From positions 128,774,001 to 128,838,000 of the forward strand of contig OZ260661.1 in NCBI GenBank assembly GCA_965285935.1: DNA of 64,000 nucleotides, written 5' to 3'. Source of the stretch: Ophelia neglecta (Eukaryota). Shown here piece by piece: positions 59,401-62,400 of the stretch. Within the stretch, counting starts at the first letter, position 1; each line of letters starts with the position of its first letter. The position numbers were made by a program, and so were the translations under genes. Below the pieces are notes generated by a model that was not told where the DNA came from, did no database searches, and worked only from the letters and a program-made list of their open reading frames with translations.

Positions 59401-62400
59401 TGAATTATATAATTGTTCTATTCAATTGATTTGCCCAAACAAATATTATTCAGGACGTCTCAACAATCATCCCAGTGGAGGATAATGATCAATAACAATT
59501 ATAGATGTAATCAAGTATCCCGAGGGAAACTTATTTTTAACATACAATTTTCGGAGGGGATGCCTGTCGTAATATTGAGATGTAATGGGTTTAGTTCATT
59601 GTTAGTAAATAAACATCTAGGAGGCAAATAGCTTTATTAATCTACATACAAATATCCCTTATATCCAATTATTGTGCCGGAAATATCTAGCAACTTTGTA
59701 TGAATACCATCCGCTCATTAAGAATATCAAGTTATTCATAAGGAATGTGCTGTCATTCGCTTGGAATGTGTGGTCATTGAATGTATGAAATGTTTATTTC
59801 GTTGTTGACAGTATTCACTACTAAATTTGGACTAACACCCATTAATTACCATCCACATTACCATTTACATGGACTTTTTCAGTAATTTTTCCACTAACAT
59901 AGTCCTACGTTTTCTGCAGCACGGTATGGGGATACCATCGGTATCTATCATGCTTCACGAGATTATTAAAATATTGTACCACGCGAACTGCAAGAACGTG
60001 ACATTCTTCCGAATAGGGACTTGTGGAGGAGTGGGTATGAATAATTATCACGTGCATGTTTTGTGTCAATAACCAAAAAACACACTGTTCGTTTAGTTTT
60101 GGTTTTGCATGTGTGTTATTAAGATAGTCGTTTTGCCATGTGTTAGTATCGTTTTTGGCAAACGTTGACATTGACATGTACTGAGCTTTCTACGCAGAAA
60201 AATGTGGACCTATTATTTCTTTTTGTTTCTAGCCTCCACTTTGAAAAACTCGTTATCCCTTAACACTCTCAGTTTTGTCAATGACTTCACATGCAAATGT
60301 GCTCAGCTTGTTTTTCGGGGCCTCCAGTTTTTTCTCTTTAATTGTACATTATATATAACAAATTTGATGCAAATAGATTGTATAAATATAAAGATGAGGC
60401 CATAATTCTATAATATCTATAAATATATAAGAAAAGGTATGCCAGTTCGAGTACTCTTGGGCTCCACCTCACTATTTCGGGTAATGGATGGAAATTATTG
60501 AATTCACTTTTCTAAATGTTTTTTTCTTATTCACTTCAAAGGAAGGCCCATGACCACTCGTCTTTAGGTTTCTAAAAGAAACCCATATTTCTGCGTATTT
60601 ATTAGCTCATACGATTATACCTCGCGAATCCCTCATGCGTATAGTGAACTCTAAGATTGGTCAGTTTTTTGCCCAGAACATGAATACATTTTCACTTTTT
60701 CAAAGGCTGTCATAATACTTTTGTCAGTAGACTTATCACTATGACTTTTCATACCTGGTTTTGCACTTTTCAGCATGATAGTTTCGATAGAAACACTTTG
60801 GTGTGGAGTTTCCCTTATTTATATTCATATCTGATTAAGTTGTTTCCATTTCATAGTTGTTTCCTCAACACATCTGTCGTCTGGGTTTCCAATTCAATAT
60901 TTTTTGGGAAAAGTGTACTTCAGCCAAAATCGTTCTTATTCTTGTTTTGTTTCTTTCAGCATGGTATCGGAAATAGTTCCTTTTCAGTTATGATGCATGA
61001 ACTGATCAAGCTATTATACTATGCCGAGGCGACAGATGTATATACTTTTAGATTAGGGACATGCGGGGGAATAGGTATATTAAGTTTAATTAATCACTTG
61101 TTGGCTAGAAATCAAATTATTTTACAAGTATAATTAATTACTATTTTGTATATATGTATTCATCTTGCAGTACCCTGTAATCAAGGAACTATTGTGATTT
61201 TTGACGGTTTAGTTAATTCTTTTGTTTGTGTCAAGAGTATTTTATTATTTATTTGTGTTCATGCCAATCTGTTTCGTATGTTTTTTATGTTGCCTTTATC
61301 AACATTTTACACGAGGACTGTACATGTCTTGACTAAAGATGAACATGTCTTGACTAAAGATGAACATGTCTTGACTAAAGATGTGCATTTATTGACTAAA
61401 GACGGACATGTCTTGATTAAAGATGTACATATCTTGATTAAAGATGTATATGTCTTGACTAAAGATGTACACGTCTTGACTAAAGATGAACATGTCTTGA
61501 CTAAAGATGTGCATTTATTGACTAAAGACGGACATATCTTGACTAAAGATGTATATGTCTTGACTAAAGATGTACACGTCTTGACTAAAGATGTACACGT
61601 CTTGACTAAAGATGTACCCGTCCTGACAAAAGATGAACACTCCCGGTTAGAGAAGGGACATTACTGTCTAACCTACATTTACGTCAAACCAATCACATGT
61701 CTATAACTCTTCGACCTTGTTGCTGATGCAGGTTTAGAACCAGGTACCGTTGTCGTCACTGAGGAAGCTGTAGACGCCCTCTTACGGCCGCAAATGGAAG
61801 TAGTAAGTAGCTTTCTTTTGATGCCGTCTGATGTCACACTCTTAATACATATTTAGAAAACCACAAGAAAAGAACCTGGAAATAGAATTGTCAACAAGTA
61901 TTAAGCAGGGAAGGTAAACCTGCGACATGACGGGATTGTAATATGTAAAACAAAAAATACTAAATAGAGAAAGCAATATGATAATATTTGTCAGGGAACA
62001 AAGACGGAACAAAATCAGTGAAAGTGAAGTTAAGTCGCTATATAAGCATTAAACGCACAAAACAAAAAGGTTTCTCCTCAAACAAACACTTTACTGTAAA
62101 TCCTGACGTTTGTCGCGAATTTTCCATTTTACATGTTCCATGTTACATTTCCTCCATGCGATTTCCTCTAACGGACTCTAACGCAGGCCGTCCGTCCTCT
62201 GGAAAGGTTGTAGATCCCTCGCCACCTGGTGTTCTAAAGCTCCCCGCAGCGGCTATAAATGTGGCTTCTCGGGAGCGAGACAGGCCCCGGGTCTAGGATC
62301 GTGTGTGGTCAAAAACCCTTAGTCGTTGATCACTGTGTATATATAGTGATATGTATATGGCAGGCCTGCGTGCCCTTGTATTGCCATAAAATTGTTTGAA

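Follow-up and report, generated by a model that had tools for sequence, protein, structure and literature searches.

Gene structure and the doubled exon

The genomic stretch analysed here, a 64-kb segment of the Ophelia neglecta genome (assembly GCA_965285935.1, contig OZ260661.1, labelled G000:C1, positions 128774001-128838000; hereafter the window, whose own positions are used below), carries on its plus strand a uridine phosphorylase gene in which exon 4 is present as two tandem copies, 4a and 4b. The gene structure was derived from tblastn searches with full-length relatives and from the eukaryotic uridine phosphorylase model TIGR01719 (NP-I fold, PF01048). All exons match consecutive stretches of this model, and within the gene exon 4 alone is doubled, model positions ~85-122 being covered twice (Table 1). 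The Gln and Arg residues that discriminate uridine in the human enzyme (Q217 and R219, PMC2939078) are present: exon 7 opens with Q-A-R-L-D-G. The exon with the start codon was not located upstream of exon 2 by tblastn with relatives or by TIGR01719. No second uridine phosphorylase gene turned up when the whole assembly was searched with the 4b peptide, the exon 7 peptide and TIGR01719. The named homologues nearest to the gene come from annelids.

Table 1 Features of the uridine phosphorylase locus (window positions)
Feature	Position	Strand	Evidence and remarks
Exon 2	57779..57893	+	tblastn; TIGR01719 positions 1-33; donor gtaagc after 57893; start coordinate approximate
Exon 3, ends in phase 0	59047..59208	+	aag/TTCGTT...GTGAGC/gtgagt; TIGR01719 positions 33-84, 47 bits
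Exon 4a, canonical copy (HGMGIPS type), 115 nt, ends in phase 1	59920..60034	+	TIGR01719 positions 85-122
Intron between 4a and 4b, 925 nt	60035..60959	+	Letters of the window
Exon 4b, derived copy (HGIGNSS type), 115 nt, phase as 4a	60960..61074	+	TIGR01719 positions 85-122
Tandem repeat array, 21-nt unit, ~15 copies	61319..61639	.	Intron between 4b and exon 5
Exon 5	61732..61802	+	First two bases finish the split Gly codon following 4a or 4b
Exon 6	62523..62661	+	tblastn; TIGR01719 positions 148-194
Exon 7, with the Q-x-R uridine-specificity residues and NIEME	63517..63663	+	TIGR01719 positions 195-242, 69.6 bits
Last exon, first part	63958..64000	+	Continues beyond the window; stop ~100 bases farther, in L006

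Both copies of exon 4 are preceded by cag and followed by gt (donors gtatga for 4a and gtatat for 4b), and the acceptor of 4b has a strong polypyrimidine tract in addition to its AG. Each copy is open in frame 1 only and encodes a peptide of the form HG-x-G ... R-x-G-T-C-G-G. Between them, 21 of 38 residues and 64 of 115 bases (56% in DNA) are identical, and at 16 of the 20 shared non-Met residues the synonymous codons differ. Both match the same part of the 287-position TIGR01719 model (63.0 bits for 4a, 50.2 bits for 4b) and the same residues, 126-163, of the human UPP1 chain 3eue_A (E 5e-15 and 5e-9, respectively). An earlier sequence-only reading of the window had proposed two homologous 115-nt exons with matching phases and intact splice sites; its coordinates proved correct to the base, and its residue and codon counts were exact on recounting.

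The same reading had stated that including both exons or neither shifts the frame, and this is what we observed. With both exons, 4a followed by 4b, translation stops after five codons of 4b; with neither, exon 3 joined to exon 5 gives V and then a stop at codon 2 of exon 5. Either exon alone forms, with exon 5, the split codon GGT (Gly). Since double inclusion and double skipping lead to an early stop, only single inclusion is productive. Every testable defining feature of a mutually exclusive pair of tandem-duplicated exons was found, apart from the observation of transcripts in Ophelia neglecta. We consider it probable that an old tandem duplication of exon 4 in a single uridine phosphorylase gene has produced a mutually exclusive pair. 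Each productive mRNA would then carry either 4a or 4b, mRNAs with both or neither would, from general knowledge, be expected to be removed by nonsense-mediated decay, and the gene very likely makes two versions of the enzyme.

An obvious question is whether the doubled exon could be an artefact of the assembly, such as a collapsed haplotype or a mis-join. Beyond the general possibility of such errors, nothing favours this explanation. The copies are just 56% identical in DNA, and the same arrangement is found in the assemblies of two other species (see below). Moreover, one short-read contig (run X3, record 22) covers 59707-61351 and bridges 4a and 4b; therefore, the pair is not an assembly join, and we give the artefact next to no probability. 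All eight exonic variants in the sample (8/8) are synonymous, including 61013 A>T, the sole variant in 4b.

No third or decayed copy of exon 4 was found in the three flanking introns, where nothing rose above shuffled controls; a 26-nt repeat at 60755, checked as a decayed exon copy, did not exceed them either. Much of the intron that separates 4b from exon 5 is taken up by the 21-nt array (consensus TGTACATGTCTTGACTAAAGA, 86% matches). Elsewhere in the assembly, further PF01048 exons lie at G000:C5:51427140-51432481 and G000:C5:20510669-20512407; near 51.43 Mb, two of them stand head-to-head, and two matches contain stops. These C5 matches were obtained with the general superfamily model only and are absent from the TIGR01719 search, and they are therefore taken for other NP-I phosphorylases.

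Distribution of the exon pair among relatives

For comparison, ~440 proteins were gathered by a 4b-peptide search and two profile or protein searches. Natural full-length relatives served as stand-ins for the two spliced products. In two siboglinid genomes, both exon types were found inside one gene and in the same 4a-then-4b order as in the window: in Ridgeia piscesae (L009), the 4a-type exon occupies 10174-10288 and the 4b-type exon 12345-12462, both with a cag acceptor and a gt donor, and in Lamellibrachia satsuma (L015), they occupy 11188-11302 and 13650-13767, again with good splice sites. In both tubeworms, 4b is 118 nt long, that is, one codon is added and the phase is kept. The similarities follow the copies: window 4b shares 25/38 residues with the 4b exons of Ridgeia and Lamellibrachia versus 19/38 with Ridgeia 4a, and window 4a shares 27/38 with Ridgeia 4a versus 19/38 with Ridgeia 4b.

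A single 4a-type exon is present in the basal annelid Owenia fusiformis (L011) and in the nemertean Lineus longissimus (L012), and each of these is identical to window 4a at 28/38 residues. A second copy of exon 4 is absent from the short intron before exon 5 in both L011 and L012. Tubulanus, like Lineus, has a single exon 4. The contig carrying P0001 stops 282 bases upstream of its exon and is uninformative on a second copy.

The deposited gene models of the two tubeworms are unusual at this locus. The Ridgeia model P0152 (354 aa; L009 3001-15897) reads through from 4a over 54 intron bases into 4b, and the Lamellibrachia model P0274 (L015 1001-18123) runs from 4a into a piece of 4b. The exon pair explains these wrong models. 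In the annotated uridine phosphorylase 2-like protein P0290 of Anneissia japonica (491 aa), the exon 4 segment and its flanks occur twice, suggesting a fusion of tandem genes or a doubling in the gene model.

The closest full-length relative, P0157, is 83-87% identical to the gene of the window in exons 2, 3, 5 and 7, and in its exon 4 segment identity is 79% with 4b and only 55% with 4a. The coding sequence of P0157 is an uninterrupted frame of 942 nt within a 2347-nt Logan contig from run ERR1712226 (L010). P0172 resembles P0157 in this pattern, with an exon 4 segment of the 4b type, and is found on contigs from ERR6349722 and ERR6349723 (L013 and L014), which differ at 2/945 coding bases. 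In L010, L013 and L014, exon 3 is followed by a 4b-type exon and then by exon 5, with 4a absent; window 4b is identical to this exon of L010 and L013 at 30/38 residues. These contigs are intron-free at seven sites where the gene studied here and those of Ridgeia, Owenia and Lineus all have introns, and they are therefore taken for mRNA; no poly(A) tail was seen on the contigs of P0157 and P0172. On this reading, 4b-type exons are used in the mRNAs of relatives. Other mRNA-like proteins of the same group, for example P0161, carry a 4a-type exon alone.

Selection and age of the duplication

To what extent have both copies been maintained as coding sequence? Between Ridgeia and Lamellibrachia, the nonsynonymous (dN) and synonymous (dS) substitution rates are 0.04 and 1.01 for 4a (dN/dS 0.03) and 0.08 and 1.83 for 4b (dN/dS 0.04); synonymous sites are short of full saturation in this comparison and saturated across the deeper split to the window. 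Both exons are thus under strong purifying selection in the tubeworms. The sequence-only reading had asked whether 4b is disrupted in relatives, and we found it intact in both Ridgeia and Lamellibrachia. Despite the saturation, each window copy is nearer to its tubeworm counterpart than to the other copy.

The tree of exon 4 segments (38 columns) unites window 4b with P0172 and the 4b copies of both tubeworms in one clade with support of 95/92, nested in a larger 4b-type group (93/93, then 92/96), while the three 4a copies join the undoubled exons of nemerteans, a priapulid and other taxa. A tree constrained to unite window 4a and 4b is worse by 28.4 log-likelihood units (approximately unbiased test, p 0.011), and a recent duplication in the window's own lineage is rejected. 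When exon 4 is masked, the tree of the remaining protein intermixes carriers of a-type and b-type segments. Taken together, the dN/dS values, the copy-wise identities, the exon tree, the constraint tests and the masked tree date the duplication to before the separation of this animal from Siboglinidae and place it later than, or outside, the Owenia lineage; both copies have stayed coding since then. The proposal of an old duplication with purifying selection on both copies is therefore borne out by the low dN/dS values, the 4b clade and the constraint test.

Another important question is whether the 4b-type sequences of relatives are separate paralogous genes, in which case they would be uninformative on the splicing of a tandem pair. 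The b-type proteins P0186 and P0291 and the a-type proteins P0272, P0273, P0276 and P0298 form well-separated sister clades, a two-clade pattern that also fits paralogues or different taxa. In addition, arthropods and fishes have paralogues with HGIG- or HGVG-type segments, which answers in part the question raised by the sequence-only reading of whether separate paralogues carry the 4b signature; in the genome of the window, which holds one uridine phosphorylase gene, there are none. On the other side, Ridgeia and Lamellibrachia hold both exon types inside one gene, and the tree with exon 4 masked does not sort P0157 (b), P0172 (b) and P0161 (a) by type. We therefore regard the paralogue explanation as improbable and return to that of an exon pair within one gene, from which the production of two enzymes is well supported by the comparative data (the siboglinid pairs, the 4b clade and the contigs of relatives).

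Probable use of the two exons and possible control of exclusivity

The copies are separated by a 925-nt intron, and steric exclusion is therefore unlikely. This intron (60035-60959) contains no extra exon copy and no significant complementarity to either exon, and the window has only short, weak inverted repeats. In the tubeworms, a block of ~150-210 nt just downstream of 4a is conserved (L009 10289-10500 versus L015 11303-11475); together with exon 4a, it is 78% identical over 295 nt, though synonymous sites are near saturation, and it may be a splicing control element. The duplex energies of the conserved Ridgeia-Lamellibrachia intron blocks are within shuffled expectation (z -1.7 to +0.5). 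Beyond the frame shift, no mechanism of exclusivity was found.

Several observations weigh against mutually exclusive use of the pair. In the introns of the window and of Ridgeia and Lamellibrachia, no conserved RNA pairing that would enforce exclusivity was detected. The public runs holding the locus are three DNA-like runs from one sample, and these show even intron coverage and zero splice joints at exons 4a and 4b. No species gave both isoforms as transcripts with identical flanks: among the 219 proteins with both flanks, no two combined near-identical flanks with different exon 4 segments, and a search of fragments of 32-101 aa for isoform pairs from the same species found none. The species behind L010 and L013 may hold both exons or just the 4b-type one. 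In the constraint tests, a single clade of siboglinid 4a and 4b was not rejected (p 0.119, 38-column alignment). Finally, the run search yielded no RNA run for this organism.

The last point would also suit the alternative that 4b is an unused relic of the duplication, a pseudo-exon ignored by the spliceosome, and that only the 4a enzyme is made. In addition, 4b is the more diverged copy, both in its score to TIGR01719 (50 vs 63 bits) and in its identity to outgroup exons (20-23/38 residues, vs 28/38 for 4a). Nevertheless, synonymous sites are saturated between the copies, yet the 4b frame is open and 21/38 residues are retained. The exon has been kept in two other genomes with a dN/dS of 0.04 and a length change of 3 nt that stays in frame, 4b-type exons occur in the mRNA-like contigs of the closest relatives, and the splice sites of window 4b are an AG acceptor preceded by a strong polypyrimidine tract and a GT donor. 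These data make the relic explanation very unlikely, and either/or splicing of 4a and 4b remains our preferred reading.

Differences between the two protein segments

According to the alignment and to published residue roles, exon 4 corresponds to about residues 108-145 of human UPP1. In the human enzyme, Arg138 and, from the partner subunit, Arg94 jointly bind phosphate across the dimer, Thr141 is adjacent to the base and Ser142 contacts the base 5 position (PMC2939078). The R and T of the R-x-G-T motif, the next residue and the following G-G are identical in 4a and 4b. The alignment with human UPP1 and the match to TIGR01719 bear out the earlier statements that the segment contains the HGMGxPS loop together with the phosphate motif R-x-G-T and that 4b keeps R and GT while the loop changes. 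The description of the pair as swapping the active-site segment stands in part: loop, helix and second-shell residues do change, but the ligand-contacting R, T, C/S and G do not.

Altogether, 17 of 38 residues differ. They comprise M3I in the loop, exon positions 5, 6, 8, 10, 12, 15, 18 and 21 in the helix, positions 23-26 in the following loop, positions 28, 29 and 32 in the strand and the last residue (38). Common to the 4b copies across species are I at 3, the absence of Pro at 6, A at 24, L/M at 32 and I at 38. As the sequence-only reading had suggested, a structure prediction was considered. The model of the 4b-type protein P0157 (predicted local distance difference test, pLDDT, 92.8) superimposes on human UPP1 and UPP2 with a template modelling (TM) score of 0.97 and a root mean square deviation of 1.1-1.7 A, and the NP-I fold is retained with the 4b-type segment in place; exon 4 forms a loop (110-112), a helix (113-130), a further loop and the R-x-G-T strand (137-146). 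Full-length natural proteins of both types pass the TIGR01719 equivalog cut-off of 250, with 397 bits for P0157 (b) and 399 bits for P0161 (a). The two proteins of Ophelia neglecta would thus differ in the loop after the strand, in the long helix and in the strand bearing the phosphate motif, and because the ligand-contacting residues are unchanged, both forms are predicted to be active uridine phosphorylases.

Across 341 distinct exon 4 segments, V at position 10 occurs in 37 of the 64 segments with I or V at position 3 versus 1 of the 277 others; the association between position 3 (M vs I/V) and position 10 (I vs V) has an odds ratio of 378, not corrected for relatedness. Because these positions co-vary, the loop residue and the helix appear to pack together, which suggests that the exon swaps a co-adapted set of residues. 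In the same 341 segments (P0001-P0440), the loss of the loop proline accompanies F or C at position 8. The corresponding loop of E. coli uridine phosphorylase presumably contributes to binding a potassium ion at the dimer interface. Such a site is missing from the human enzyme (PMC2664818).

These differences raise the question of whether the two enzymes are biochemically distinct. One alternative retains either/or use of the exons but takes the enzymes to be equivalent, the pair being kept for expression control at the level of splicing (tissue, stage or dosage). The identity of the ligand-touching residues of the segment in 4a and 4b (human R138, T141 and S142, PMC2939078) fits this explanation, as do the similar scores of a- and b-type proteins against the family model. 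However, the type-specific differences (I at 3, P lost at 6, A at 24, L/M at 32) are conserved across species, which suggests selection on the differences themselves. In addition, exon position 3 (M in 4a, I in 4b) corresponds in the alignment to M64 in the HGMG motif of E. coli purine nucleoside phosphorylase (chain residues 62-94), for which M64V is listed as a specificity-altering mutation (PMC4580623). The latter is an engineered change in a bacterial hexameric purine enzyme; by analogy, the natural M/I swap may alter specificity in uridine phosphorylase. We consider full equivalence rather doubtful and a functional difference between the 4a and 4b enzymes plausible.

If there is such a difference, the HG(M/I)G loop, the lost loop proline and the surface and second-shell changes could tune the ribose pocket, the kinetics or the behaviour of the dimer. 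In its furthest form, this idea makes the choice of exon a switch operated by splicing, in which the 4b form would have a different nucleoside range or kinetics. Since both subunits of the dimer contribute to the active sites, 4a/4b heterodimers would, if this is true, constitute a third enzyme species. We put the switch forward tentatively, as a possibility that the residue differences allow.

Comparison with known systems and significance

Mutually exclusive splicing is in itself ordinary and well known; however, a search of the literature found no report of exon duplication or mutually exclusive exons in uridine phosphorylase, in agreement with the sequence-only reading, which knew of none. 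Exons 9 and 10 of vertebrate pyruvate kinase M (PKM1/PKM2) are mutually exclusive. They are the nearest enzyme example among the classic pairs, and the likeness to 4a/4b is considerable: a metabolic enzyme, a single gene, two tandem homologous exons of which one enters each mRNA, and a swapped segment at the subunit interface with the catalytic residues unchanged. The systems differ in enzyme and fold, and for PKM the splicing regulators and the allosteric consequence are established. Unlike in PKM, the frame shift alone makes double inclusion or skipping unproductive in 4a/4b.

Two forms of uridine phosphorylase per animal are also found in vertebrates (UPP1/UPP2) and, as tandem UPP1-like genes, in the fish Hoplias. 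These forms arose by duplication of the whole gene and diverge along the entire protein, whereas here 38 residues of one gene are affected. In Hoplias malabaricus, P0224, P0270 and P0348 (from one 73-Mb record) have an HGIG...SVMMHELIK segment like that of 4b, apparently by convergence; P0224 (X2) and P0270 (X1) are isoforms of one UPP1-like protein that differ at the C-terminus only. Schistosoma mansoni, a lophotrochozoan, has two closely related isoforms, which we take to be the products of two genes, one without activity. Both align to exon 4, but they were deposited as two separate proteins (PDB 4txh, 5cyf/5cyg). In Tubulanus polymorphus, RefSeq contains homologous alternative exons in the same gene family (X1, P0269; X2, P0174); in this case, the last exon is the alternative one and the isoforms are identical until there, so that the HGMG/R-x-G-T exon is not involved.

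Pyrimidine salvage starts with uridine phosphorylase, which is also well studied as an enzyme of drug activation. A natural, conserved pair of exons in its gene is a ready-made experiment on a loop-helix-strand unit of 38 residues near the phosphate/ribose pocket, and this unit includes the position at which an engineered change alters specificity in a related enzyme. The pair also offers a clean case for studying when animals pick exon duplication over gene duplication to obtain two isoenzymes. If the splice-operated switch is real, annelids would achieve through splicing what in vertebrates falls to UPP1 and UPP2.

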